Part shown: positions 3,001 through 58,561 of the stretch, one piece after another
Position numbering within the stretch: the first letter of the stretch is position 1
Layout: each line of letters opens with the position of its first letter
Origin: Klebsormidium nitens
Lineage: Eukaryota > Plantae > Klebsormidiophyceae
Length of the DNA: 64,000 nucleotides
Assembly (NCBI GenBank): GCA_000708835.1
Contig: DF237422.1
Span: 1-64,000 of the forward strand
Direction: 5' to 3'
Notes under the pieces: model-generated
Told to the model about the DNA's origin: nothing
Seen by the model: the letters and a program-made list of their open reading frames with translations, nothing else
The model's database searches: none
Position numbers and translations under genes: made by a program

Positions 3001-6000
3001 CCTTTGAAAATGGGAACCACTTAACATTGTGAGCGTTTCGACCAGCATCATCAACTGTTTGAATCCTTCGTTTAGATTCCCTGAAGTTAGATCATCCACG
3101 AATCTGGCAGAATCCTTAAGGCAAGTCTGGTTTGGAAGTCCATGACGATCAATTTTGCAAAGCGTTCTGCGTACACTAAATCTTCGCTTGCTGCCCACAA
3201 CTCCCTCAGTAAAGTTGGCAACGTCTGTACTTGGGACGCAGAAATTTCCTTGTAGCGACACATGGGATGGGGGAAGAGGAGCTTGTCGTGGCAACTGCAG
3301 CTTTCTGCAGGAAAATAAAGGCAAAGCGCTTCATATTGCTGATTTATCTTCGTGCAGGCCGCAGTGTGGTTTCTGGGCGAGAACGCAAACTACGCCGCAT
3401 CAGAGTACGCATGGGAGCCGCAGTCAGCGGCGGGCCAGATGCTGATGATGATGGAAGGGGAGAAGATGGTCATGGCGGCAGGAGTCCGTAACCCGACCCT
3501 TGCGGCGGCGCTAGCACGATTGCAGCGGTGTGCGGTGGCAAGTAGCTGGGAGGTGAGTCGGAATCCTTTAGCGGTTTACCTAAGTTTTGAGTTTTTGTTC
3601 TCATCCTGGGTGTCACTCACTGAAGGATGATGGAAGAAAACACGGTTGTCATGGTGCNNNNNNNNNNNNNNNNNNNNNNNNNNNNNNNNNNNNNNNNNNN
3701 NNNNNNNNNNNNNNNNNNNNNNNNNNNNNNNNNNNNNNNNNNNNNNNNNNNNNNNNNNNNNNNNNNNNNNNNNNNNNNNNNNNNNNNNNNNNNNNNNNNN
3801 NNNNNNNNNNNNNNNNNNNNNNNNNNNNNNNNNNNNNNNNNNNNNNNNNNNNNNNNNNNNNNNNNNNNNNNNNNNNNNNNNNNNNNNNNNNNNNNNNNNN
3901 NNNNNNNNNNNNNNNNNNNNNNNNNNNNNNNNNNNNNNNNNNNNNNNNNNNNNNNNNNNNNNNNNNNNNNNNNNNNNNNNNNNNNNNNNNNNNNNNNNNN
4001 NNNNNNNNNNNNNNNNNNNNNNNNNNNNNNNNNNNNNNNNNNNNNNNNNNNNNNNNNNNNNNNNNNNNNNNNNNNNNNNNNNNNNNNNNNNNNNNNNNNN
4101 NNNNNNNNNNNNNNNNNNNNNNNNNNNNNNNNNNNNNNNNNNNNNNNNNNNNNNNNNNNNNNNNNNNNNNNNNNNCACTGAAGGATGATGGAAGAAAACA
4201 CGGTTGTCATGGTGCGACAGTGAGGACCGACTGCAGCAGTGCGCGGTAGCGAGTAGCTGGGAGGTGAGTCACGTATGTTCTCAGTGATCCAGAACTCTTG
4301 TCGCATGATCACGTGTATCTAATCCGCTGGGTATGCTTTTATGGTGGGGATGGAAGGGGAGAAGATGGTCATGCCTGCGGAAGTGAGAAACCCGACGCTT
4401 GCGGCAGCGCTGGCACGGCTCCAGCGGTGCGCAGTGGTGAGTAGCTGGGAGGTAAGTTGGATTTTTCTGTCGAAGTCGTTTGTCAGATACCTTAGGTCCC
4501 GGTGATAGTCAGATTCGGGCTTGGTAGAAGCTAATGATGCAGAAGATGCAACGGGAAGAAGAAGTGAAAGGCGAGAGTTTGTAGGAGGTGAGTCAAATGT
4601 GGCAGCATCTATCCTATGTATTCGGTGCTCATTTCTGTATGGCCGCAGCCTGAGTGGATTTCGATGGCAAATTGGAACGGACATATTCTCGTGGCAGCGG
4701 GGGTGTGGAAACTTACTCCGTTTTGATCATCGTGTCTTCAAAACAAGATCCTACTGTTAAGTTCGAACTTGCGCAGGTACGTGCAGTGGCTGCGCAGGCG
4801 ATCATCACCGTTGCCCGCCGCTCCGGCAAGCCTTACCGGCTCCTCTGATACGCTTTGCACTGTGAAGAATGCCCATCGGCCTGTACGTCAACGACATTTG
4901 CCTTTCATCGGACAAACAAAAGGTACTGTAGTCTGTACATTCCTACTCAAGACGAGCTAACTGCGGATCCTGATTTTCAAGCGCTGGCTCTTGCAGGTAC
5001 GTGTTGTGGCGGCTCAGGCGATCATCACCGTCGCCCTCCGCTCGGGCGAACCGTACCGGCTCCAGTGCTACGAGTTCCTCACGTCACTCTTGCGCGGCGA
5101 GAAGCTGAAGCACAAGCTGCAAGAGCAACAGGGGGTGGCTAGTAGCGGGGAGGACGAGGGGGGGTCCGGGTCGGGGCTCGCGAACGTGGTCGCACCGATG
5201 CTACGGATGCTGGACGAGATCTACACGGCGCAGGACCAGTTTGTGCGGTGAGTAGGGGGACGGAATTTTGCGCAGAACATTTATTTTCAGGTTTCCTGAA
5301 AGTGCAATTGCATCAGATTTGCCGGTCAAATTTGTTTTGGGATATTGATAGGGGTCCGGATTGGGGCTCGCGAACGTGGGCGCGCCGATGCTGCGGATGC
5401 TGGACGAGATCTACACGGCACAGGACCAGGTTTGTGCGGCAAGCGGTTCTTGCGCAGTACCGCTTAAATTTGAATGTTTCTTAAGGGTAGAGTAGAGTGG
5501 AGGGCGGTAAATGTTGGAAAAGTTAAGCGACAAGGTCGGGTTCAAAAGAGGAGTGGACCGAGCTTCAATACACGGTCTCCTTCGCCTCTCTCTCTGCTGG
5601 AAGGGGGACCTTGCAATGTCCTAGTCGAAAAGACTTACTTAACCTTAACTCTAAACTTTAGCAAAGCTCTTAAAGGGATCTGCAGCAGCATGAAAATCCA
5701 AGGAACGGTGGACCGAACCCCAATTGTAGTCGTTCTACACCACGCACGACACCCTCCTTCGCCTGGAAGTCCTTCATGTGCTTCGAAGGCATGTTCGAAG
5801 ATTCTACCCGGAACCTTCTTATTGCAGTTGAATTCGGATTTTCGTTGTCATGCTTGCGGGGATCTCCGGCAACACGAGGTTCCAAGGAAGAGTGGACCGA
5901 ACCCCAACTCGAGTGGCTACACAACACGCACCGACGCCCTTCTTCGACTCGTCTCCCTCTCTGTTTCAAGTAACACCTCCCACTCGGCACCAGCCTTAGA

Positions 6001-41223: not shown

Positions 41224-44200
41224 TTAGTAGCAGTGCTCACTGTACACCTTGTCTACATTCTGGCCCCACTCGTTGTGGTACTTGTCGAGGAGCTTGTCGG
41301 CAGGGCACATGCCTGCATACGGCAAAGGTGGCCACATAAAGCGATGCTCAGGAGATTGAACTCTCAGGTGGAGCAAAGCAAGCGCAGTAAACAGAAGACT
41401 TTTGAGCTGACGCCGTGCAGCCAGGCGACTATCGGTACAGCGAGCGAAACAAGGGGAACAAAGTCTTCTGTGCAATATTCCGAGGCCGACAACAACTCGG
41501 GCCGCCATTAGGCAGGACAGCAGGACTGCGGTTGTATTGACTCCCATGTTTACGACGCCGTTCGAACTTCAAACTCTGCCGTGACTCCAGAAACATGGGT
41601 TACTTTGAGCAGAAAAAGGGATATGATGCAGGCGACCCGCCGATGACACGTGTACCCAGGCTGTTCGCTTTTGCAGAAGAAGGAGAACGCCGACCAAAGG
41701 AGAAAGCTGTACACGGATGTTCAGAAGTGATAGATACCAACGAAGCGTCACCTTACCTGTGCGCGCAATGTCTTCCAGCATCTCAACGTACTTCTCTTCC
41801 TTCAGACCCCGCCTCTCAAGGCCCTCCTGCGAGGAGCGAGGCTATAGTCAGTTACTTGTGTTGTTAAGACTGTCGTTTTCCAAAACGGCCTTCTGTTACG
41901 GTATACTTCCAAGGAAGTGACGGAAGCTTAAATCTGCACCACTTGACTACCACCGGAAGAACAAGTACAAAAATGAGAAAAACACAGAAAAGACTGGCTT
42001 CACAATAGCAAGCGACTGGTTCCTGCGCAACTGGCTGGGCAATCGCTCCTCGGAACGGCGTCAGACGGCGTCCATTCCGCTGCACTCCAAAACAAGCTGA
42101 AACCTTCGAGACGGAACGAGAAACTGAATTTGCAAGTGACAGAAATGAGACAAGAAATTCGATTTTTTTAAGGCAACCTGCGATATTATGCGCAATCCTT
42201 TTGACCGGTCGTGTCTCGAATCGGCGTTGAATAACGTTCCGATCCGCTGCACTTCAAGTCAAACTGAAGCTCTGAGAATGAAATCGAGAACTGAATGTGC
42301 ATGGGCGGAATGTAAGAAGGGCGGATCGGCTTACTTTAGCGAGCTGCACGACTTGATTTGAAAACCTCAAAACTTAGCCGGGACAAGATTTTGCAAGGAC
42401 GAAACGAGACAAGGGCGGATTCGGCTTACTTTGGCGAAGTGCACGACTTTTTGGGCAACCTTTGGACTGTCCGGTCGTTTCTTCAAGGGGCGTAAAAAAG
42501 TCGTTCCATTCTGCTGCCCTTTAAGACAGACAGAAACCTCCAAGACGAAACCAAACAAATAGAAATCACCAAAGACAAACCCACGACGAGGAGAGACTGT
42601 CTTACTTTGGCGAGCTGCACGACCTTTTGCGCAACGTCTTGAACGGTCGTGCCTCGAAACACCGTCTTCAACCCGGTCCTTGGCACGTTGTTGCGCAGCG
42701 CATCGCGCTCCTCTGCGGTCCAATCCTTGATGAGCTGGAGCGCGGCCTGGAGCGACTTGTCATCATAGAGGAGACCAACCTGGTGCCGCAGAGGAAAAGG
42801 TTTAGGAAGGAGCAACTTAGCAGCTAAGAAAAGGGCGCTCCTCTGCGGTCCACGCTGCAGTAAGCTGGAGCGTGGCCTTGATGGACTTGTCGTCGTAGAG
42901 GAGACCAACCTGGTGCCGAAGAGGAAAGAGTTTCAGGAGGGAACAACTTAGCGGCTGATAAAGCGTTCCTCTCCGGTCCAAGCTGCAATAAGCTGGAGCG
43001 TGGCCTTGATGGACTTGTCGTCGTAGACGCGACCAACCTGATGCCGAAGAGGACAACGTTTCAAGAGGGAGCGACTTAGCGGCTGATAAAGCGTTCCTCT
43101 GCGGTCCAAATTGCGATGAGCTGGAGCGCGGCCTGGAGGCACTTGACTTCGCAGGAGAAACCGACCTGGTGCCAAGAAGGAGAAGGCGTGAATTGATGGC
43201 ATCCATTTTCTGTTTGGCATAAGCAGCTGAGGTGTGATTTTGAACGCCTTTATGCACCCAACAAAAGGGCGCTCCTCTGCGGTTTACGTAGCTATGAGCT
43301 GGAGCGCGGCCTGGAGCGATGCCAAACGTGGCATCGTAGAGGAGATCAAGCTGTTTCGGAAGAAGGAAACATTTGGGATGGTGGCTGTCACATTCACCAG
43401 CTACCAAAAGGGGCAGTCCTTTGCGGTGCAGTCGGGAACAAGCTGTACCGCGGACTGGAGAGACTTGTCGGCATAGGGAATTCCACTCTGATGCCAAAAA
43501 TATAACGGGAGGCTTAAACAACCAGATGCCCGGGAGGAGTGGCAAAGCTTGCGAAGGCCCTGAATTGCTATTGTTTTGCGGTGCGTTCTCCTCATCGAGC
43601 TCGGTAACAGACTAGAGCGACTTGCTGTCGTGAAAATGACCTAGTGCCGAGGAGAAGTCAAGAAATAGTTCGAAGCGCAACATGCCAGATACGACAACAG
43701 TGGCTGACAGGAGAAGAAACTTCAGAACGAATGGCGTTTTCACGTGCCCGCCGACAAAGACAATCAAGTCGAGGGGAGGGGTATTGATCACGACGACAAA
43801 GTCCAAACGTGTGAAGATCAAACACCAGTTTAGAAGACTCTGAAGAAGTCGGCTATGAACAGCAATCGTCATCAACCGACTCCCGATTGTGTTGGGGGAA
43901 GGAACTACTGCACCAAGACGAATGCCTGTAGCCGGAAATGGCGTATCAAGTTTGCAGGACTACGGCTGCAGGCGAATAATCGCTTGGATGAATGAAGGAC
44001 GGAGAAAGCACGGGTCTTTCGATGTGCTCACCCAGAGAGCGGACTGCGCAGTGATGTGCTCGGGCGGGCCGTTGTCCGAGCCCCGCATCTCGACGATGTT
44101 CTTTAGCCGCACCTGCGTTGACAAACAAAAGGGATGAGCCGAATTTTCAAAGCTAGAACGGGGTCAGGAATCTCGCTCATGAAGACGCCATGAAAGTGTC

Positions 44201-47200
44201 TCTTACTTCAAACCCTGATTCTGGCGAACCCAGTTCCTTAGAGCTCCAATCTGTCGCAGCTCACCAGAAACACTTCCCTACGTAAAGATGTACAAAATGG
44301 AAGAGGAGCGGTTCAGGACGCGCCTGTCGTGATCTTAACGATCCTATAAAATCTGCACAGACTGCCAGATGTATTCTAATGACGTGCGTTGCAATATCGT
44401 GTCCTGTCTTTGTCGATTGCCTTCTGATGGATCCATTCGCTCTGACAAAGTACACAAGACAACGATCGTCATCGAAGATGCTATCATCTGAGTGACTAGC
44501 CTCACCTCCGACAGTATGCTGTTGAGCTGGTTCAACCAGTCCGCCATAGTTGGGTACTTTCCAGGGAGGGGCTCGAGCTTGCCAGCCATGAAGTCCTGGA
44601 AACAATGCACCGTGGTTGAGGGTTGGAGGAGAAAGCAAATGGGTACAATATCTGAGCTGCTACCGTCGTTTTGCAATTGACACCGGCTAAAAGTTTTGCA
44701 CTTGACATCGGCTGAACGAACTGTACTTACGACTCCTCCTTCTGTTCCGTTGAGCGGACAGGAGTGTGGATCTTCCACTGTTTACCAAGTAATTGAGATC
44801 GTTAGCAAGGATACTGCGCGTCTCAGCGCAGTGCCATCGAACCCTCGAGCTAGATCCCACAGCCCGCTGCCTGTTGGGTGAGCACCGAATGCAAAAAACC
44901 CTCAAACTCTACGAATGCACAGAACCCTCCATGAAAAGATGCAGCACAAAGCGTCAGTTTCTGAGCCTTGACACATTGAAACTTACCTTGAAATCCAGTC
45001 CCAGGGCCTTGACGTACTCCTTCCCATTCTGGACGTAGTACATGGGCACGTCGAGCGCCCAGTCTACAAATTTCTCAAACCTGTAACGAACAAGGTTGCC
45101 GCATTAGGGCATCAACTTACAAACATGGCCACAATTGTCGTAACGTTGATTGTTATTGCGGAGTTCGTCCGAGCTGATACCGTTTCTTATTCTACCATCG
45201 TAATTCTAAGACAGTCAGTCTGGCCCAATGGCAATTTGGGCGATCGCATGGTGTATGTGGGCAGGGGGCGGTTTCCTTCGTTAGTAAAAAGCGAAGCTAC
45301 ACAGCGTGTCCGCAACTTAGTCCGTCGCGGCGCTCATCTTTTCCAACCAATGCATGGATTCAAGCCAATCAATCGTAGACGGCCTAGCTTTGCGAATCCC
45401 AGGGATAGCCCCCCGTTCGCAATGGAAAAACATGCCGCTATCACCACTGGAAAATTTTCGAATGAAACCGAAGCGAAGTATTGTAAAGGCAAACGTTCTC
45501 AAAACGCACCCAAAGTCGTCGTCGAACACGAACGGCAGCATTCCGGTGCGGTCCGGGTCGGTGTCGGTCCACGTGATGCTGCGGTAGCTCACGAACCCGC
45601 TGGGCTTCCCTTCGTAAAACGGCGAGTTGGCGAAAAGCGCTGTGGCAATCTGGGGGCAGAAAACTCGAGAATTCAAAAACCCCGCTACCCGAACCACGCT
45701 TCTTTGTTTTGGCCGCAAGCCTGGTGGCTCGGAAAAACTACCACCCGCCGCCGCGACAGTCAATCTGCATTCTCCACCTTGCCGACTACGCTGTCAGCGA
45801 GACTTTGATCAACCGCAGCCTCCATCGCTAAGTAGGTCCAACAGGAATGGTGTACCAAGAGAATAACAAGTTACGTTCGCGTTCAAAGAAACTCACCGGT
45901 TGCAGCGCCAGACCGACGCGCATCTTGTTCACCATGTCCTGCTCCGACTCATAATCGAGGTTCACCTGCACAAAAACGACGATAAAATCATTCTGAAGTT
46001 GCGGGATCTCATAGGTGTTTCTATCCGCAACGCAGCCGTTTATCCAGGACCCAGCTGTCTTCTGACGGGTGCCGAGACATTCAGATGCCGCGCACAACAC
46101 ACCACCTTTTTGCTGTCAGACCAAAGTTGACAACGAGCCCTGGTTCGTACCTGGACCGTGCACGTGCGATACATGACGTCATGTCCGTGCTCCCCCTTCT
46201 GTGAGATGAGGTCACTGGCCAGGATGTGCCGCTCCTTGGGAATAGTCGGAGATGACGTCCACTTCGGATCGAAGCCTAGGGTCAAGAAACCTGCGCCGAG
46301 CTCCTTGCAGACTGCCTTAACCTGGAAATGAACCCGGATATGATGTTGATCTGAATGACCCGAGTTGAAACCGAGTTTGAAGACCGAAACTCATTTTGGG
46401 CCAAAGCCAAGGGTCAAAAAACCTGCGGCGAGCTTCTTGCAGACTGCCTTTACCTGGATATGAAGCTGGATATGAAGCCGAATATGACGCCACTTCAGAT
46501 GGGCTGAAAGAAACAGAGTAAAAACATCTCCAGATTGACTTGAGCGGACCCGAATATTTTTAGACTAACCCGAGGTTTCTAGCTAATCCCCTAAGCTCTT
46601 CCACCCGAAAACCTAAACGTTTATCCTGCAACATAATCACGATCACGGTGGAGTAGATAAGCCGGCTTCAACTTCAACTAATACAGGTTTGGTGAGGCAG
46701 GTTGCCCGGCTCTTCACGAATCGCTTCGACCTGAAAAGTTCTGTAATCGAGTACATTGACTCCTAGCCATTGACGCAAGGTTTCGAACCACTGGCGGAGT
46801 GCTCCCCCGCTGTATCACATTCTATACTGTTCTCATGAGCACCCCAGAAGGGCGGCGTCGAACGAGCTGCTGAAATCCCACGTTTGCCGAGGGGGCATCT
46901 GAAAATCAAGCAATGCATATTACACCCACATACTGGAACGCTCCCAACCTGGAACGACACTGCTGACAACACGTCCAGATGGGAGTGTCCGCCTGTCACC
47001 TTCGTTCCAGATTGTTGACTGATCTTCAATGAAAACATTCGACATTCTTTCTGCATCTTGTGGAGCCTGCTGGAAAGTGATCAATGCTCGCGATTGGCCC
47101 CCGAAGCCCTGACAGTCCCGACTTCTCATGCAAACCATACGTGTGCATCTTGCTTACTTCAGCGCACTCCTCTTCGCTTCATACAATTGGGCCGAGCTTG

Positions 47201-49394
47201 CTGAGATCATAAGGACGCGATGTGAGCAGACTCCGTACCCAGTACCTCATTTGAGCACTGTGAAAAAGAGGAACATGATTGGAGTATGAAGAAGAGGTTA
47301 GTTGAACCGACCTGACTGATGTGGTTGTTAACCTCCTCAAGCGTCTCATGCAACGTCTTGAACGGCGCACCACTCAACTCGAGCTGGCCCCCAGGTTCCA
47401 ACGTGATGCTGGCACCGTTCTGGAAATGAAATTCTGTCAGCATATGGTGCAGTTTACAGTCAAAAACCAAATGAGGACAAGGATTCGGATCAAGCTCAAG
47501 ATGAGGAATGAGATCGATTCTCTGCAGCAACGGTCCGTAGTATCTGCATTCTTGATGACAAACTTGTGGCCCGATGAGAAAATAGTACTGTGTTGATGCA
47601 GCTTGTGTGCCAGCAGCTCTTACCGCCAGCATTCCAGCTTGATGCGTGCATGGATTCCAAAGCAATCCTTGGTTGCGACGCTAACATGCTTCAAAAAATA
47701 TCATGTGCCAGAATGTCGACTTTACTAAATGTTGACCAGTACAGTCTTAAGAGGCCTGCCGCTGCCAAAAGTAGCGATTGCTTTCTGCGGCTCGGAGGAT
47801 CAGGGGGTGATATGACAGACTCAACGCAGATTTACAGATCTGTTGAAAACATCTCCAGAATCGTGTCTGGAAAAGTCTGATCTGAAGGACGATTAGAAGA
47901 CGAAATTTCCACGGAGAAAGCTAGGGATTCCGAAAGCCGTTCACATGAACGGTTGCGTCGCCAATTGTGAAAGTATGCTATGCGAAAGAGATCTCTTATG
48001 ATTGAATTTAAGCTTTTTTCCAGGGGAGATTCGAGCGTAAGTGAGTTGAACCAGCTTAGCAGAAGACTCGTTCAATCCTGATTGTAGGCAGTAGAATCTT
48101 CCGATGACATACCCCAACAGAACAATATGCCAATCTTTTCAATCAATCTGAGCAAGCTTACTTAGGTAATTCCTGTCAAATGCATTCCAAGATGTTTTGA
48201 AGGTCACCTGCTTGAGCGCGAGCAGGTTGCCATGTTCAAACGACCGCTCCCACCCAAACTTATCCGCTAGCTTTCCCAGAATGGTGCGGATCTCCTCGTA
48301 GGTCAGACGCTTCTTGTCGCTGACCCGGAAACCAATCTTCTCATGCTCGGTCCCAATCCTGTAGACATTTCAAAACATCCGATAAGTTTGAAAATTCCTG
48401 CTCCTTGACATTAGCTCTGACAGATGCCTCTTGTCACAGCCCGGAAGTTTTCTTCTTCTCATCCTCAGGTTCAGTGGCAAGGTGGACAGACGCAGTGTTA
48501 CAGATGCAAGGCTCTTTCATTCAAATATTGCAATATATCTCCCAATTCAATCTGGCATTGAGCAAAGAGTGCCTCTGCTGTAGGTTTTTTCGCGGAAAGT
48601 GGACCTCCTGGTCGCTTTGACTGAGCCTGTGGTTGACCCGACAGCCCGGTCTACTTATGAAAGCCATAACAACTCTTGTTAAGAGATTCCAATTGTGGCT
48701 CATTGGTTTTGATGAAGAAGCTGAGTTGTAGCCACATAGTTTGTGGTCCATTCTTTGTTGAATACATTGTGACTTAACAGTAGCTTTCATATACCCACCC
48801 ATTTGTAACGACCACCTTAGAAACAACATGGTGAATGGCAAACCCAATGCTTCAGAGCTTATTCTTGGCTGAATGAGCTAGCAAAGTGCAAAGAACACTT
48901 GAGCTAGAACCACATACAAAAGAAAGGCGCTGTGAATCCATTCTCTTATGGACACTAACACACTTACAGAAGTCTTATTCAACCATGGCGGCATGTGATA
49001 CGTCATGCATGCAAAGGAATAGCATCTACAAGCAGATGCAACCTGCATCCTCTACCAGGAATTCTCATGAAACAGGCGCCAATGTGTACATCGGCTTATC
49101 ACACATGCAAAAAAGTAAGTTCCCAGAGCATGAGAGCAAAATCCTAGTTGCACTTCACATACCACCACATTGCATCACAACATCAAAGATAGGACTGGAT
49201 CAACAATTGAAATTCTGATGAATTACCAAGGTGGTCTCTATATCCTCTCACACAGCCGGATTGAAGCATCAGACTCACCGCCACTGGTCCCTTGGAGTGC
49301 ACGCCTTTTTGAAGAAGTCAACAAGATCTTGCTTCGTCAACCTGGCTTCCTCTCCATTTTCCCCCTTGGAGCCGCTCGCTTTCTGATCAGCCAT
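41224..49394 (-). CDS. Divergent plant-type glutamate-cysteine ligase paralog (GCS2 family), 450 aa, no transit peptide
   Basis: 12 exons: 49394-49279, 48358-48208, 47419-47312, 46321-46151, 45965-45897, 45649-45510, 45080-44987, 44595-44506, 44112-44032, 42779-42606, 41826-41757, 41312-41224; 1353 nt, GT-AG, no internal stop. Motifs [62 protein letters not shown]. Confidence 0.93.
42780..43500 (-). repeat. About 5-6 serial decaying copies of the acceptor plus 5' end of exon 42779-42606
   Basis: agctggagcg.ggcc...gacttgtc.tc.tag...gaccaacctg.tgccg recurs at roughly 125-nt spacing upstream of the real exon. Confidence 0.9.
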
Positions 49395-50455
49395 CTTTCT
49401 TGACAAGTCGAATGATACCTTTTGTCCCTACCTGTCCGACTGACCTTCCCCCTGAAATTCCCAGCTTCGCGAAGATCACGCTGCTCTGTTCCTCCAAACA
49501 AGAACGTCTGTGTGGGAAAAATGGCAGTGGCAATTGTTGCCTTCCTTTTCGAAGCTGGGAGGGATTCTCTCTGCTGCGTCCATAGGGGATCACTACCGTT
49601 CGATAGCACGCCATGCACGCCAAGAAGGCCACGTTTGGCGCCAGCGCTGTTCTGCTGCACCGCCATGTTCCAACTTCCACCACTTGTCGCTTCCACTGCA
49701 ATTGGCGCAATTGCGGGGCATAAGCTATGCCCTGGAAAGTCAAAAGTTTGGCTCCTCTAGTTACAAGCCTGCTGAAGTTACTACGGTAGTACTACCGTGG
49801 TATGTACCAGCCGACCAGGTACCGGTATTCATTGTGCAGAGTCGGACCTTTCAATCATTGAGCTCTTCAGGCCACTGTAATTGCGTCAGAATGACGACAA
49901 CGTTGAACGCAGAATTCGCTCTGTCTTATCTTCAAGTTCTGTTCTTAACCGCAACTTCTCCCGCAGCCAAGTTTCTGGCGCTTCTGAGATTTGTAGAGTA
50001 GGTATCGAAGGTAGTACTAGAAGGGAGGTCCTTTAAACTTTTAATATCCGCTGTAACCATGTAGCGGGTTAGGTCTTACCTACGTTAGCAATCCAATCCA
50101 AATCGGGTTACGAAAACAACATGGAATGATCCTGAATCTTAACACAGCATTTCTAGCGCTATCATCATGTACGGTTCCTCCGTATTTTGGTGTTCAAAGC
50201 GCTTTCCTGGTCCTGCTGGACTGCAGCAGCGCTGCCCCGTCACTCATCCCTGGCGAGTCCGCGCAATCTGGATTGGCTCTTTTGCGCTGCTCTGAACATT
50301 TTGTGGCGGCTTCAAGTTGGTCCTGTTGACAATCTCTGAGCGAAGTGCAACCTGCCACATTCATCGCTTCCATGCAGATCTTCATGCAGCTCGTCTTGCG
50401 CACGGAGGGCGTCGTTGGCCAGACTTAGGGGTAAGGACGGATCGGCATTTGCTCG
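49395..50455. promoter_or_regulatory. Putative bidirectional promoter/5'UTR interval between the two GCL genes
   Basis: 1061 nt between divergent start codons at 49394 (-) and 50456 (+). No specific cis-elements identified. Confidence 0.5.
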
Positions 50456-53400
50456 ATGGCGGACGGGGCGACCATGAGGGCAGCCTGCGGGCACGCTCTT
50501 CCTCACCACGCGCCTCTTGGTCAGCGGCAGGGATCCAGGCAGGAAGCATCCGTTTCTTCTAGGCTTGTGAATGTGGGCCCAGGACGAGTCCACAGGCATG
50601 CTTCAAATGCACGCGCCGGCCCACAGATCTTGCCTCGGATACGACAAAATTGTCTTGCTTCTGCACCGGTTGGTTGTAGAAAGAAAAGCTTAGAGCATGC
50701 AGTTCACGGGAGGCATCGGCTAGAGGGATCGGTATCGAGGTTGAGCGGAGGGTCTGACTTGAAGTCAGAATCGACGATGCACAGAAGAGGGAAAGGGACG
50801 ATTGTTGCCGCAGGACCGCCGACTGAGGAGGTTGTCACGGATACGAAGATGCTGACAAAGGCTGACCTTGTTGAGTACATGAAGAAAGGATGCAAACCGA
50901 AGGAGAATTGGCGGTAAGAACCGCTGCAGTTTATTGTCAGATTCAATCCACAAGATTGACAAGATTGATAGATTGTTATCCTGGTCTTAAGGACCGACTT
51001 GAATCTATCTCAAATGTGGCTTCAGCTTTTCGATGGTGGTACATCTGTTCGCTAACCCTAATCTGCCATTCTGTGCTTATGTTTTGAAGATGCATCAACG
51101 GTGCATGTCATGGCGATTTCTGGATATGTGATTGGTCCGAGATTCAAAAGGCCGCCAGCCTTTCGGCATTGGTGGATGAGGCCCAAACATCAACACTATT
51201 GGCCTCTTTGAGAATTTTCTAAGCATGACACTACGGTTTGTATTCTTGCCTGGCTTGTTGGAAGCACATTCTGATGTCCTGGGCGGAGCTAAGAGAGCAA
51301 AGGGCTGCAGATTGCTCACGATCAACAGCGTCCAAGCGCTGTCACCTTCCCGCTTCGAACTTGACATCTGATACGATCCACCTTCAAGTTCCAGCAATTT
51401 GTGTGACAACTTGATTACCACAAGCTGAAAAGCTGGCCTCTGAGTTTTATCTCTGCTTGTTTTGAAAGAAAGTCTGTTGAAAGAAAGAGAGGATGGATTC
51501 TCTACAGCACAGATTCGAATCAAGCTGACGGTTTCCGTTTCTTTTTGTAACCTGCATGAAACAATTGCATATTTAGTTGATGTTTTCTGAGTCCGTTTAT
51601 AACCTGCACAAAATGCTTGAACTTTTTACTCTTATCCCTCCCTGCATTTCAGAGCAGATGTGTAACACAGAGGTCATGAAAAGTAAGGTCAGAAAACTCA
51701 CTCTAATCATATCAAGTTAAGATTTGTCAGGGTCTGACTGTACAGCACCTGCTCTGCAGCATAGGGACTGAACACGAAAAGTTTGGGTTCAAGTTTGAGG
51801 ACAAGCGGCGGCTAAACTACGAGGAGATCCATCAGCTGCTTGAGGCGCTGGCTGACCGGTTTGGATGGGAGCGGGTGTTTGAGAACAACAAGTTGATTGC
51901 ACTTAAGCAGGTAAAACAAGAAGCAGTCCCCTTCCATATGATCTGGAATTTGCAGTTCATGGATGAAAGCAATCGTGCTTTCTGAGGGCGTTCGGCGATT
52001 GGTTTTACACTACTCATCATTGGCTTTTCGGAAAGTGGTATAAGGTACATAATGATGCTAATGAAGACAATTGTTGCTTGTCCATCCATACAAACGCTGC
52101 GAGCTGATGCATATTCAAATATACTGTAGTGACAATCAAAGACTTTGGAGTTAGCAGCTGACAGATGTGATCAAGTGGACGAGCCTTTTCCCCCCGAGGA
52201 ATACTAGCAAGTGCTTTGAACCTTGAGACACGCTTCATGCTCAAGCAGGGGTGCTAGGCTCGAGCTAGATGACCTGCCTCCTTCACTACTTCCTTTATTA
52301 CAAGTAGCTGATTAGTAATTTGCTTCGTCCTGCAGAGCGGCCAAAGCATCACGCTAGAGCCAGGGGGTCAGTTTGAGCTGAGCGGGGCCCCCTTGAGCAC
52401 TCTGCACCAGACATGTGGAGAGGTCAACAGCCACCTGTATCAAGTGAGGCTGCTGAGCAGCCTTTGTTGCCACTGTCCCTCATTTGACATTGCCATCTGG
52501 TGGGAGAAATCCTGCTATCTGCAGTTGCCACCTATGATTAAACCACCACCCCGGGTATAACTCGGGGCAAACCGGCTGGCATTCGCTCCAGCGGCCACCG
52601 AAATTCAAATTTCGGCCCGAAGGCGCCCGCTTCCAGCTTGTGCATTTTTGACCTTATACATCAAAGAAACTAAAGCATTACTTCACCGTTTTAGGCGGTC
52701 TTGCTTTCTAGAGCTCTATCTTAGTGGTATCAGCAAGGCCAGGTCGAAACCGCCGCTTAATTCGTGAAGGAACGGCCTGTTTTAATGTAGGCAAGGGTAC
52801 CTTCTTTATGTGTGCGTCCAGTGTGCGCCCGTCGCGAATTCAAGTTGCGAACTTGATTATGAGCATTCCTGGTTACCAGGAGTATTTATACCTTGGGTGG
52901 TGGTTTAATCGTGGAGGATTGGTCAAGGGGGTTTGTGAACTGAAATACCTGTCGTTGTGTCCAAGGGCTAGGAGATGCTGAGTCTCCTTATGGAAAGGAC
53001 GATATAAAAGTTTGCAGTCATTCGAGACAGGATCAGGAACTCCCTAGGTCTGACAGAAAGGCTGCCAGAACAGCAGATTCGCAATAGTGAAGGCTGTGTT
53101 CAAGAGTCCACTTCAGAACGACTTCCTGTGTTCAGCATGGTCTGGTATTTGGATGCCGGCAACCCCTCACTGATAAAAATAAGGAAAAGAAGGCAGAGGA
53201 CATTCACCTCACTGATTGGTACCTGACCATAGAAGCTGAGAACAAGCACGTATGCAATGAAATGCTCTGTAACGAGCAACAAAGGAGTGCGCCCTATCAT
53301 AGATCAGGTCCACAAGAGACTGGTGCCACGTAGTGTGCCACCGTAGTGTGCGACAATGACAGTACTTTCAAATAGTGAGTTTGCAGTGCCGCTGTGACAG

Positions 53401-56400
53401 GCTCTTTCAGTTTACATATTTGCTTTGATTGCCCTTTCAGGTGAAGACAGTCTGTGAGGAGATGGGTGCCGGCTTTCTGGGGCTCGGTTTCGACCCCAAG
53501 TGGAGCATCGAGGACATTCCGATCATGCCAAAGGGCCGCTACAAGCTGATGAAGGAATACATGCCGCGCGTGGGGTCTCACGGGCGCGACATGATGTTCC
53601 GCACATGCACCGTGCAAGTCAACCTGGACTTTGACACCGAGCGCGACATGATCAACAAGATGCGGGTCGGGCTGGCTTTGCAACCGGTGAGTTTGGGGGT
53701 TGGCTCGCAGGGGTGAGATGACGTGTCAGAGGGGAATTCATAATATCATCGAAAGGATGGTACTGTTGACACCGAGCTCGACATTGTGTAAGAGATGCGG
53801 GTCGAGCTGGGTCTCCAACCGTTCGGATCTAACTCGCTCAGTTGATGAATGGCCTGCTTTTAAACGGACATGACATGTCATCAAGGGATATCATGATCAT
53901 ATTGTGCCGGCAAACACACGGAACATCCGGACGGCTGGAGCTGCATCTGGTGTCTTCCAGAGGTCGATCTAAACGTAGAAAAGGCAGTAGTTTACGATAG
54001 TCAGAAGCCATCTTCCAGAGCTCCCATTGTGCCAACCGCTCGCGCTTTGCTGACCCGTCTAGTTCCACCAGCAGCCCCGTGCTGACTCCCTATCTCGATC
54101 ATGTTTGGCAGAAGCTTACAAAGGCTCAAGTTTCTCGCTTGATCATTGAATTCTTTTGCTTGTGACATGATGGACTTCTCACACTCTCTTCTGCACACCG
54201 CTCGCTCTTCGCTAACCAACTCCGATCTACACCCCTTCAGATCGCGACGGCTCTGTTCGCCAACTCCCCATTCACTGAGGGCAAGCCCAACGGCTACCTG
54301 AGCTTCCGAAGTCAAATCTGGAAAGACGTGGATCCCCACCGGACGGGCATGCTGCCGTTTGTCTTTGACGATGATTTTGGGTGAGCCGTTTTGCTGGACG
54401 CTCGGCCATGGTCGACCCAGATGCGACATGCAACTGACTAGTTAGAGTAGCTTTGAATGGAATGGAGAGAGAGGACTTGTCTTTCGTGCTTCAGCAGCTA
54501 TTACCAGATTTACAGTAGCCGCTGTCACGGAATGCTGTCAGTTGCAATGATCATCTGGAGGGGTGGGGGGGAGTCGAGACCTGAAACAGTTGCTTCTCGT
54601 CACGGTTTCAAAGCCTATGTTTCGGAGGCAGACCGCAGATATAATCCAAGAACCAGAGATCGGGATTTGGACGCTTGTGTTTGGACTATCCACAGACCGA
54701 CTCTGAGCTCTGGCCTCGAATATCGAAGCTCTTTGGGCCTAGCACTCGTTTGATCAGAAAGCCTTAACCCCGCTCTCGAACCCTGACCTCTAACCTTGAA
54801 TTAGAAGCCTGGCATTCACAATCTGGATTGCGACCGTCCTCTTCAGACTTGTCCGGAAGATTGAATCTCGGAGCGAATGTTGCAGGTTCGAAAAGTACGT
54901 AGACTACGCTCTAAATGTGGCAATGTACTTCGTGTACCGGAAGAAGGGGTACGTGGACGCTCTTGGGCTGGACTTCAAGGTATTGACCGCAGCCTCGTTG
55001 ATTTTGCCGCGTTAATCTGTTTTCCGTAAATGTCGCTTTTACTTCCATCAGCATATTTGCAAATATGGTTTTGTATGTTGAGTGCGAGTACTTTGGCTTG
55101 CTTTCTCATGACCGATTGCCGTCTGTCTACTTTTACGGTTTGCCTCCTTCCGGCCGATTCTCTTTGGTCCATCATTTTTCTTTGGTTTGCCTTTCTCCTT
55201 AAGCGACCAGTTTGAAAGGAGGACACTCATGGCGAGCACGACTTTCGAATTTTGGGCTTTTGATCCCTCATTTTCAATCTGGCTCGCCAGAACGATGCCT
55301 ACAGACACCTGGCATACCTTATCGGTGACATTACGTCCCAACATGCAGCTTTTGATCGCTTGACTTCCCATTCCGGTGGTGCATCCACCGAGATCGTATC
55401 GATCAATCATCACTGGCACAAACGTAGCCGGGATGATTTAAGATTCAAACCTACTGTCAAACCTACTGTAAACCACACCCGCTCCCAGTGTCATCTGCTA
55501 ACCTGTTTCGCTCTGCCACGTGGCTAGGATTTCATGGCGGGCAAATTGTCGGCCCTGCCCGGAGAGTATCCGACAATCAACGATTGGGAAAACCACCTAA
55601 CCACCATCTTCCCCGAGGTAAGCAAAGCGCGGCCAACTTCCTCACATCCCCGTACTCCTAGGACGGTTGTGAACTCCCATCTTCTCCATCGTCAAATCAG
55701 CACCATTGTTTGCCCTACTGCTCTAGTGGACCATTGAGTGGATGTGTATTTGTACGGTGCAAGCTATACGAAGGAGCCTTTGATCACAATCCAGCCTTGC
55801 AGGCCGCCACGACAGAGACCTTAATTTCAGCTGTCAAGAAACTCACCTCATATTCGACCTGTGTCGGACCTGTGATGTTTCGAGGAACATTTTTGCTGTG
55901 AATCTCATCTTCCTTTTGATTGGCTTTGAACAGTTCTTTGCGGCCTTATTTAAGGGCCAGACACGTGGCACTGAAAAACGATATTAGTTCATCCCTTCTG
56001 ACGTGATTCTCAATTGTCAAGGCTCGGCGCTATCGACAGCCGTGGTTTGCGTTTAGCCAGGGATGACACGTATCGCTATCGGAGGCAAATGTGGACATCA
56101 CTTGAGAGTCGCCAAACTGGTCCACACACAACCAATCAATCCCCTCACTTCAACCATTGCTGCCAAGAGATATTTCAAAAGCGACGTATTTGACGCAGCA
56201 AGTGCCTCGGATTGAATGTCTCCCGAGACGAACCCCTTTGTGACCACGCCATCTAGAATCCGCCCAAGTCCGAGATGAGAAAACTTTCTCGAACCATTGG
56301 CAACATTTACATCGCACATACTCATGAGCACCCAAACGCTCGCAAAAACGTACCTCCAAGCCCATTCCACGCACAGTAGGCCGCCTCTTACCCGCCCCAC

Positions 56401-58561
56401 TCTCGCCGCAGGTACGCCTGAAGAAATATATCGAGATGCGCGGCGCGGATGCGGGCCCGTGGAAGTCGTTGTGCGCGCTGCCCGCGTTGTGGGTATGTCC
56501 CCGCAAACCCTAAACCCCGGACCGCTCTGCTCACGCACCGTCTTTTTCCTCGTCCGAATGCTGCAGGTGCGACTGAAACGGTACATTGAAATGCGGGGGG
56601 CGGATAATGGGTGTGTAGACCTGATTCTGGGGCAGTCGGCCATGTGGGTGAGTCGAGAAGGAGGCGGTTAGAAGGGCCTCCGTACCGCTGTCACTCCCAT
56701 CTTCCGAGTCGGTTTTAGAAAGGCCTGCATCATGTTTCATGGAAGCAGACTTTCCTTACATCATCGGTGTGTGAGAGCTGGATGTTACGAGGATTTATAC
56801 ATCGGGTCTGGAACTCTCGAGCTGTTGCTAGAGGGCTCAACTTGAAACACACCACCTTGTGGGGCAAGGATAACGCTCAACCGAGTGCATTCCACATCTG
56901 GTTTCTCAGATTTGTGCTGCAAAGAAGGTTGCTGAAGGGAATCCGCTGTTTCATAATCTGTCGGGCCAGTCGTTTCGCCCAATATTGTTTCCATCCTTTT
57001 ATTACAAGAAGTCCTCCTTAAATCGTGTCATGAAGGCCTTTCTGCTTGATAAGCTCCCCCCTTTCCTTTCCCGCACCCCTCTGTATTGGAAGAAAGTCTC
57101 GGGCTCCTTCTGGAAACAGGGGTGTCCCAATCACGGTCACCCAGTCCTTGCTGCAAGCGACTACCAAAGTGATTCCCCTGACTCTCAGTCGCCCAAAAGG
57201 CGGTGGATCGGAGGACGCCATCTACTGTAGCCCCTCCCGATTGCTTTGCCCCACTCTCTGCGCAGAACACGTCACCTTAGCATACTCTAGAGCGGCAACC
57301 ATGATAATTGCCGTCCCGACCACATTGGAATGTTCAGCTGGAACGCAACCGTTGCCTAGTGATGAACCGTTTAATGAAAGGTGTAGAGTAGATTTTCAAT
57401 CCGCACTGCCTCTGTCCCATCGCAGCTGGGGCGGTCGGACCTTTGTTTTGACAAGGAGTCGCTCTCAAGGGTGCCTGGACCCGAACCCCGACTGTTTGAA
57501 CCCTCTATTCAAAACCGTAGTCGTCCACAAGCAGGATCAACCTCAGTGTACCAAAATCCTTTTCTCCTTTCCCCCGTCACAGGTCGGGCTTTTGTACGAC
57601 GAGGAGTCGCTACAAGGCTGCCTGGACCTGATCTCCGACTGGACGACTGGCGAGATGCAAATGCTGCGCGACAAGGTCCCGGTCACCGGCCTGCGCACGC
57701 CCTTCCGCGACGGCATGGTCCGCCACGTGGCACAGGATGTTCTCAAGCTTGCGAGGGTGAGCGTTCGAGGACCCTCCTTTTGCATACCGTACAGAACATG
57801 ACATCGTAACAGCACAGAGGGGGGATCATCAAGTGCATGTACACGCAACTCTTTTTGACAGCACGGCCACTGTCCTGAAGCTCGCGCGGGTGAGCTCCCA
57901 AAAAACGCGTTTTGATTCGGAGCGGCTTGAAAGCTGCAAGCTTCGAGAGGTGCACTTCCTGAGTACCGTGCATTATTGCGCGCCCTCTGGAGAAGTCAGT
58001 TTGCTCAAAGTCCTTTCCAAGTCGCATTGGTTAGCGTACAAAGACTTCCAATCTGAAAAGCCTGTTACTGCCCAGCGTACGCATTTGTGTGGTTTATGCT
58101 AAATGGCTTAGTGCTTTGATTCGTTCCCGTTGTCTGGGTTTGCCATTTGTGCATTGTTGGAACAGGACTTGGAGGTCACGCTTATAGGAGCATTTACGTG
58201 CATACTAGAACCGTTGCTGACAGTCTGTTTGCTTGCTTTCCACAGGAGGGCCTGGAGCGACGCGGCTTCAACGAGGCTGAGTTCCTGAAGGGTCTGGAGG
58301 ACATCGCACGAAAAGGTGAGGCATTTGCGCGGGACAAGTTCGAAGTAGGAACAGATATGCAGACTCCGACGGCGCTGAAATATCAACGGACACGTACTCA
58401 GACAAGTGGGTTCTAATAGTAAAAGGTGTGCATATCTCACGCCCTCTGAACAAGTGCCTTCTTCTTCTGCAGGAGTGACGTCCGCTGATGTCCTGCTTGA
58501 CAAATATCACAACGAGTGGGACGAGGACGTAGACCGAGTCTACGACGAGTTTCTCTACTGA
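50456..58561 (+). CDS. GSH1: Glutamate-cysteine ligase (gamma-glutamylcysteine synthetase), plant GSH1 type, with ~115-aa transit-peptide-like extension; 566 aa using exon 8a
   Basis: Exons 50456-50913, 51760-51910, 52336-52443, 53441-53686, 54241-54380, 54886-54979, 55528-55617, 56412-56492 (8a), 57583-57756, 58246-58315, 58473-58561. Motifs [88 protein letters not shown]. Confidence 0.96.
56567..56647 (+). CDS. Second copy of GSH1 exon 8 (8b), candidate mutually exclusive exon: [27 protein letters not shown]
   Basis: ctgcag| 81 nt |gtgagt; same length and phase as exon 8a, no stop, catalytic EMRGAD intact, 8 synonymous versus 1 nonsynonymous difference over the first 13 codons. Confidence 0.8.

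Follow-up and report, generated by a model that had tools for sequence, protein, structure and literature searches.

The window analysed here, the first 64,000 nt of contig DF237422.1 of Klebsormidium nitens, a streptophyte alga and an early-diverging relative of land plants, carries two plant-type glutamate-cysteine ligase (GCL) genes in head-to-head orientation, as revealed by a six-frame comparison of both regions. The gene on the plus strand is canonical. The gene on the minus strand (41224-49394) is a transcribed, exactly spliced paralog under purifying selection, in which both cysteines of the plant GCL regulatory disulfide and most of the conserved dimer-interface residues are replaced. 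We consider it probable that this gene encodes a maintained, switch-less and monomeric GCL acting outside the plastid.

Both gene models were assembled manually, guided by reading frames and splice sites, in DNA that is eukaryotic, intron-bearing and of about 50% G+C. The minus-strand gene comprises 12 coding exons (49394-49279, 48358-48208, 47419-47312, 46321-46151, 45965-45897, 45649-45510, 45080-44987, 44595-44506, 44112-44032, 42779-42606, 41826-41757, and 41312-41224, the last including the stop codon). Its coding sequence of 1353 nt specifies 450 amino acids, all 11 introns are GT-AG, and the 450 codons contain neither a stop nor a frameshift. A first reading made from the sequence only had given the span 44032-47419, which does enclose both motifs discussed below and is much shorter than the gene itself. 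The model is identical at every residue to the K. nitens protein GAQ88957.1 (P0236, 450 amino acids), recovered by a profile search with minus exons 2-11 aligned to three full-length relatives. GenBank thus already annotates the gene, under the generic name "glutamate-cysteine ligase" only.

Contigs from four public sequencing runs, belonging to four studies, were aligned to positions 43600-49500. The eight introns inside this interval are all removed as modelled, with 0 mismatches, and at the joints the plus strand shows CT..AC, which on the strand of the gene is GT..AG. Full-length contigs of the paralog are 1.9-2.0 kb long. One contig with a loose end at 44030 continues into exon 10 at 42779, and into none of the repeat copies that lie upstream of this exon. 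These contigs give no expression levels. They show that the open reading frame, described as otherwise intact by the sequence-only reading, is indeed unbroken, spliced exactly as modelled and present in transcripts.

The regulatory disulfide of plant GCL links Cys186 and Cys406 in Arabidopsis (At), corresponding to Cys178 and Cys398 in Brassica juncea (Bj) (PMC6463388, PMC9426629), in agreement with the positions given in the sequence-only reading. The dimer zipper is made of 11 B. juncea residues: E133, F135, E136, Q176, N182, Y186, E193, W394, R395, K471, and F475 (PMC6463388, PMC9426629). Dimerization accompanies oxidation, yet redox activation does not need the dimer (PMC6463388), so that the earlier description of activation as coupled to dimerization is out of date. 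The four motifs quoted in that reading lie where it had placed them, at 47312-47353 and 44041-44070 on the minus strand and at 52402-52443 and 56454-56483 on the plus strand. In alignments to chains of 2gwc, 6gmo, and 9ufc, a leucine of the minus copy corresponds to the first switch cysteine and a threonine, 220 residues further on, to the second; this distance is that between C186 and C406 in Arabidopsis.

We compiled a residue table from an alignment of 31 family members, in which canonical sequences are those of land plants, the chlorophyte-like sequences, and the plus copy with its exon 8a. In the canonical sequences C186, N190, Y194, and C406 (At numbering) are invariant; E201, W402, and R or K at 403 are each kept in all but one, and position 184 is a variable Q. 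The K. nitens minus copy has E184, L186, N190, S194, K201, P402, E403, and T406, and its orthologue from a second species, described below, has E184, M186, K190, D194, K201, A402, E403, and V406. The leucine codon at the site of the first cysteine (At C186, Bj C178) lies at 47339-47341 by alignment to 9ufc and 2gwc. According to the column table, the serine codon at the interface tyrosine (At Y194, Bj Y186) lies at 47315-47317. The lysine codon at the interface glutamate (At E201, Bj E193), a charge reversal facing K479, lies at 46304-46306. In the place of W402-R403-x-L405-C406 the alignment to 2gwc shows P-E-H-I-T, encoded at 44050-44064 (minus strand), with the proline at 44062-44064, the glutamate at 44059-44061, and the threonine at 44050-44052; the orthologue reads A-E-Q-I-V. 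The absence of both cysteines, of the tyrosine, and of the tryptophan/basic pair (Bj Y186, W394, R395), noticed initially from the sequence only, is therefore confirmed by the 31-member alignment. The K. nitens minus copy retains N190 and K479. In the paralogs, D or E at 141 faces E403 and K201 faces K or R at 479, so that both salt bridges of the zipper become like-charge pairs. From the zipper set E141-R403, E201-K479, Y194, W402, and F483, what is left is an aromatic F or Y at 483; F143 is also kept. At the other end of the protein, a cysteine encoded at 41230-41232, before the final tyrosine, replaces the canonical Leu or Met at the second-last aligned position (At 521) in both orthologues.

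This residue loss exceeds background divergence. When only columns with at least 90% conservation across 23 canonical sequences are counted, the paralog is changed at 6 of the 8 switch or interface columns, versus 34 of 188 elsewhere (one-sided Fisher's exact test, p=0.0011), and the orthologue gives the same figures. Moreover, the two minus-type orthologues differ from each other at 8 of 13 switch/interface positions, versus 24% of positions elsewhere (p=0.004). This pattern fits a release from constraint, in which these sites would behave as freed surface positions and not as a new interface.

A search with the full-length protein identified one single cluster nearer to the paralog than the neighboring plus protein. 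Its representative, P0246, is 447 amino acids long and 76% identical to the paralog. It is encoded on intron-free transcripts from a Joint Genome Institute (JGI) metatranscriptome and from a Logan run (L001, L003), and a 110-kb metagenome contig of a second species (L002/L004) carries its exons. On this contig, a minus-type and a plus-type gene are likewise head-to-head, approximately 1.25 kb apart. The survey of orthologues proposed in the sequence-only reading thus recovers a second protein deprived of both cysteines, which are replaced by Met and Val. A search of representatives with exon 4 gave matches of at most 53% identity, many of them fragments, and no close relative.

In a maximum-likelihood (ML) tree the three genes group as (plus,(minus, orthologue)) with supports of 100 and 99. 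The stem branch of the minus genes is 0.91 long versus 0.18 for the plus branch. Tree placement, common intron positions, and adjacency together suggest a local inverted duplication in the common ancestor, followed by a burst of change. The switch is present in the sister gene and in every canonical relative, and its absence from the paralog is therefore most simply read as a loss. In K. nitens, the minus and plus copies share 62% amino acid identity, with proportions of nonsynonymous and synonymous differences (pN and pS) of 0.248 and 0.77 and a dN of 0.30; as pS is saturated, neither dS nor ω can be estimated for this pair. Identity of the minus copy to land plants is 56%. Between the two species, the minus pair (75.7% amino acid identity, pN 0.154, pS 0.707, dN 0.173, dS ~2.1) gives a rough ω of ~0.08, or 0.12 by an ungapped exon-wise estimate, and the plus pair (90.3% identity, pN 0.05, pS 0.671, dN 0.052, dS 1.68) a similarly rough ω of ~0.03. 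The paralog has therefore changed at replacement sites about three times as fast as the neighboring plus gene and is yet clearly constrained by purifying selection. A dN/dS near 1, which had been named beforehand as the sign of decay, is not seen.

The two genes also differ by the N-termini of their products. The start codon of the paralog (49392-49394, minus strand) precedes the conserved LTK.DLV core by 18 residues. Transcript contigs are unbroken from 49278 to beyond 49500, and the reading frame is closed by a stop 11 codons ahead of the ATG; the protein therefore begins just 18 residues before the core. In the orthologue nine residues precede the core, and the transcripts again contain in-frame stops upstream. 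With N-termini of 18 or 9 residues behind such stops, the minus-type proteins do not qualify as carriers of a plastid transit peptide. Conversely, the plus reading frame stays open over the 107 codons that precede the annotated start, GAQ88958.1 (459 amino acids) beginning at Met108. Within this upstream stretch (50456-50776) the first start codon is conserved in the second species, where it opens the sequence MADTATMRAAC, and conservation is poor over the next ~120 residues. A transit peptide would be expected to show this pattern, and the plus protein probably carries a presequence of ~130 amino acids. Based on the conserved upstream start and on this pattern, we regard the public 459-residue model as truncated. 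The contrast, in both species, between a long presequence on the plus protein and none on the minus protein supports different compartments for the two enzymes, and the paralog would reside outside the plastid.

Despite these changes, the predicted structure of the paralog retains the plant GCL fold. The protein scores 575.3 bits on the NCBIfam profile TIGR01436 (glu_cys_lig_pln; cut-off 463.15) over profile positions 5-446, compared with 592 for the orthologue, 683 for the plus copy, and 835 for Arabidopsis GCL, and a match to Pfam PF04107 (GCS2) is recorded. Its AlphaFold2 model has a mean predicted local distance difference test (pLDDT) score of 91.1 and a predicted template modeling (pTM) score of 0.91. 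The top Foldseek matches of this model are the chains of B. juncea GCL (2gwc), with TM scores of 0.96-0.99 and a root-mean-square deviation (rmsd) of 0.8 Å over 436 columns. This comparison with the B. juncea structure had been suggested as a check by the sequence-only reading.

In family (TIGR01436/PF04107), fold (TM 0.96-0.99), and sequence (55% identity), the paralog resembles the plastid GCLs such as Arabidopsis GSH1 and BjGCL (2gwc/6gmo), whose switch and interface residues are present in the K. nitens plus copy. Unlike them, it is devoid of Cys186, Cys406, Tyr194, Trp402, and a transit peptide, and has both salt bridges like-charged. GCL of land plants is described as exclusively plastidic, and as single-copy in Arabidopsis (PMC6463388, PMC9426629). 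In AtGCL, the substitutions R403E (Glu141/Glu403), E201K (Lys201/Lys479), and Y194L (Leu194) each abolish the dimer, and the C186S enzyme (Ser186) no longer responds to dithiothreitol (DTT) (Yang et al. 2019, PMC6463388). The paralogs of both species combine what these mutants carried singly: E403, K201, a nonaromatic residue at 194, and no Cys186. As R403E, E201K, and the loss of Tyr194 resemble changes that one by one made AtGCL monomeric (PMC6463388), a monomeric state of the paralog is all the more expected. The parallel has limits. The engineered interface mutants still had the disulfide and remained redox-responsive, whereas the paralog cannot form that disulfide; and its changes are natural, combined, old, and set amid many other substitutions.

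The absence of the switch from a plant-type GCL is not new as such, since Cys-less algal enzymes and unregulated proteobacterial ones have been reviewed (PMC9426629). Proteobacterial plant-type GCLs are monomeric and insensitive to DTT (Gromes et al. 2008, as cited in PMC9426629), and some keep both cysteines and are yet unregulated (PMC9426629). They share with the predicted paralog the absence of a working thiol switch and of a dimer transition. One sequence of our alignment that we take as bacterial resembles the paralog further, with small or hydrophobic residues at 186 and 406 and the motif I-T-A-x-S at the place of 405-409. Unlike the proteobacterial enzymes, the paralog is an intron-bearing eukaryotic duplicate nested among switch-bearing algal and plant genes, and its switch-less state is for this reason likely secondary. 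Some green algal GCLs are said to lack both cysteines (PMC9426629); in the clade of our tree that includes the named chlorophytes, all 13 sequences keep both, and no Cys-less green alga was seen there.

Substitutions in the paralog extend beyond the switch. Out of 139 columns invariant in all canonical sequences, both orthologues deviate at 20. These fall into clusters at At 224-249 (Y229, M232, M236, P237, M246), 339-342 (with F339, Y341, and R342), 383-384 (F383), and 397 (A397), and further include L408, P409, and others. The first of these clusters encompasses At 228-239, where we take the Arabidopsis cad2 and rax1 alleles to lie. Arg220 is retained in the alignment. The known gsh1 alleles of Arabidopsis all map to the surroundings of the active site (bioRxiv 10.1101/2025.09.18.677034). 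The acceptor pocket or lid may thus be altered, and to describe the paralog simply as a GCL without the switch may fall short.

A parallel case was found in ferns. The divergent GCLs of Adiantum capillus-veneris (P0080) and A. nelumboides (P0115) form an independent long branch within the ferns in the ML tree. They carry C186S, N190S, Y194S, E201K or R, and W402V or A, and 6 of their 8 conserved switch/interface columns are changed (p=0.0006). Among their 22 changed invariant sites, 10 coincide with the 20 of the Klebsormidium paralog, versus 3.2 expected (p=9e-5). Unlike the paralog, they keep R403 and C406 and possess an N-terminal extension. In A. capillus-veneris the gene model extends over 140 kb and may be a mis-join, and a search with P0080 returned land plants only. 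This parallel suggests that switch and interface evolve together as a single module.

The canonical plus gene has itself a putative alternative to the second half of the switch. Its exon 8 exists as 8a (56412-56492) and as a putative alternative exon 8b (56567-56647), both of 81 nt and in the same phase, and 8b is without W402, R/K403, and C406. The statement of the sequence-only reading that the plus copy keeps both cysteines thus holds with exon 8a and fails with exon 8b. Exon 8b is conserved in the second species (L004 14390-14476), where it reads GADNGPVEHIIAKSALW and shares 20 of 27 residues with minus exon 9 of K. nitens. Exon 8b and minus exon 9 have DNG, Ile405, and Gln408-Ser409 in common; when the exon is compared in full, 8a is about as far from 8b as either of them is from the minus exon (15-16 of 27 amino acids). 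The likeness could reflect common descent, gene conversion, or convergence; convergence is favored by the bacterial-like sequence, as it shows I-T-A-x-S at this very place. Because of this Cys406-less exon in the plus gene, the loss of Cys406 may not be private to the paralog. An isoform with exon 8b would resemble the paralog in this region and differ from it by keeping Cys186, Tyr194, Glu201, and the presequence, being an exon choice and not a separate gene. A hidden 8a-like exon with its cysteine was sought in minus introns 8 and 9 of both species, and none was found.

We propose that the minus gene, a paralog of the plastid GCL of K. nitens, is functional and maintained by selection, and that it arose by local inverted duplication in an ancestor common to at least one other alga. 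A burst of substitution on the stem branch would have removed both cysteines of the regulatory disulfide, most of the conserved residues of the homodimer zipper, with reversal of both salt bridges, and the N-terminal presequence, and purifying selection would have acted since. The protein would most likely be a monomeric γ-glutamyl ligase outside the plastid that could not be set by the Cys186-Cys406 thiol switch, and it would probably still make γ-glutamylcysteine. A redox-blind, monomeric, non-plastid enzyme is the well-supported part of this prediction; it withstood all the computational tests applied here and gains strength from the published AtGCL mutants. Several observations weigh against the proposal. 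That the runs behind the contigs are RNA is a guess, even if contigs free of introns are hardly explicable otherwise, and dS is near saturation, which makes the ω values rough. AtGCL has low activity when it is reduced or deprived of the disulfide, and a Cys-less enzyme could be permanently weak in the absence of compensating changes. The conserved new cysteine at At 521 could offer another thiol control. Finally, among 105 columns invariant in the canonical and three outgroup sequences, 12-14 are changed, with clusters at At 224-249, 339-342, and 383-397, and 91-93 are kept, and the catalytic efficiency or the acceptor substrate may differ.

This last point leads to an alternative that departs from our proposal in the substrate only and that we consider possible, if somewhat unlikely: a neofunctionalized ligase, in which loss of the switch was accompanied by a change of the acceptor pocket. 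Such an enzyme would ligate glutamate to an acceptor that is not cysteine, or to a broader set of amino acids or amines, and would not serve bulk glutathione synthesis. The long stem branch and the replacement in both orthologues of the residues listed above, invariant in the 23 canonical sequences, speak for it, as does the location of the gsh1 alleles. The sites changed in common with Adiantum also suggest a functional shift that can be repeated. The paralog nevertheless scores above the curated cut-off of the TIGR01436 equivalog, its predicted fold superposes on that of BjGCL at 0.8 Å, and it retains Arg220, which in AtGCL contacts the glycine end of bound glutathione.

The direction of change could also be questioned. 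If the paralog descended from an old Cys-less lineage, bacterial-like or carrying an 8b-type exon, it would never have been switched, and nothing would have been lost. The residues shared by minus exon 9 and exon 8b, closest in the second species, and the bacterial-like I-T-A-x-S motif would suit such an origin. We find it improbable, as the paralog nests within a Cys-bearing eukaryotic clade as sister of the plus gene (100/99), adjacent to it and with introns in the same places. The first cysteine belongs to exon 3, of which there is no alternative copy, so that at least this loss is real, and the equal distances between 8a, 8b, and the minus exon are compatible with convergence. Lastly, the minus gene might be a decaying duplicate whose reading frame remained open by chance. 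It does diverge more than the plus copy, and conserved regulatory residues are gone. Yet synonymous sites are saturated between the copies, and 450 open codons and 11 intact GT-AG introns persist; splicing is exact in four studies, and the second species has an intact orthologue, for which pN is far lower than pS. On the grounds of gene structure, splicing, orthologue, and pN/pS, we rejected this pseudogene explanation, whose probability we regard as very low.

The canonical gene (50456-58561, plus strand) corresponds to GAQ88958.1, located on the same 73-kb scaffold as the minus gene. It has 11 exons encoding 566 amino acids, the ~130-residue presequence included: 50456-50913, 51760-51910, 52336-52443, 53441-53686, 54241-54380, 54886-54979, 55528-55617, one of the two versions of exon 8, 57583-57756, 58246-58315, and 58473-58561. 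Intron positions are common to both genes, save for one extra intron of the minus gene (45966-46150), which splits the counterpart of plus exon 4, contiguous at 53441-53686. This intron is missing from the minus gene of the second species (contiguous at L002 9914-10171) and is removed in each of the four runs; it resembles a lineage-specific gain. The two divergent start codons are separated by 1.06 kb (49395-50455), a spacer presumed to act as a shared bidirectional promoter region. Comparison of the spacers of the two species for conserved promoter elements gave a single 21-nt match near the plus start. This match (20/21 identical) lies at 50379-50399, 57-77 nt upstream of the plus start codon, and probably belongs to the 5' untranslated region of the plus gene.

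Partial exon copies are present in the minus gene of K. nitens and in the plus gene of the second species. In minus intron 9, a tandem repeat of 128 bp in 3.7 copies (42705-43185) has units made of the last ~53 nt of the intron, with the acceptor site, and the first 25 codons of exon 10, and sets three decoy acceptor/exon starts upstream of the true exon 10 (42779). Minus intron 3 contains a partial copy of the exon 4 acceptor and first 24 codons (46394-46465), which ends in a stop and is unused in the transcript contigs examined. A comparable pseudo-exon copy occurs in the plus gene of the second species (L004 10336-10514). An assembly gap of 518 N is located at 3658-4175 of the window.

No paper on GCL in Klebsormidium was found in the limited literature searched. 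A broader and rather doubtful extension of our proposal is that streptophytes more than once evolved a hitherto unrecognized subfamily of extraplastidic γ-glutamyl ligases, in Klebsormidiophyceae and in Adiantum, which would have shed the switch and the zipper and remodeled At 224-249, 339-342, and 383, with altered regulation and possibly a new acceptor. In the usual account, plant glutathione synthesis is controlled at one plastid enzyme by way of one disulfide. K. nitens keeps the switched enzyme together with a long-maintained copy without the disulfide, the dimer surface, or a transit peptide, and its canonical gene can drop half of the switch by a putative exon choice. The finding, of real interest to plant redox biochemistry, is moderately and not radically surprising. 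The paralog is a candidate redox-independent GCL, would allow testing whether plastid confinement of GCL and its thiol control evolved together, and offers a natural experiment on the purpose of the switch and of the dimer.

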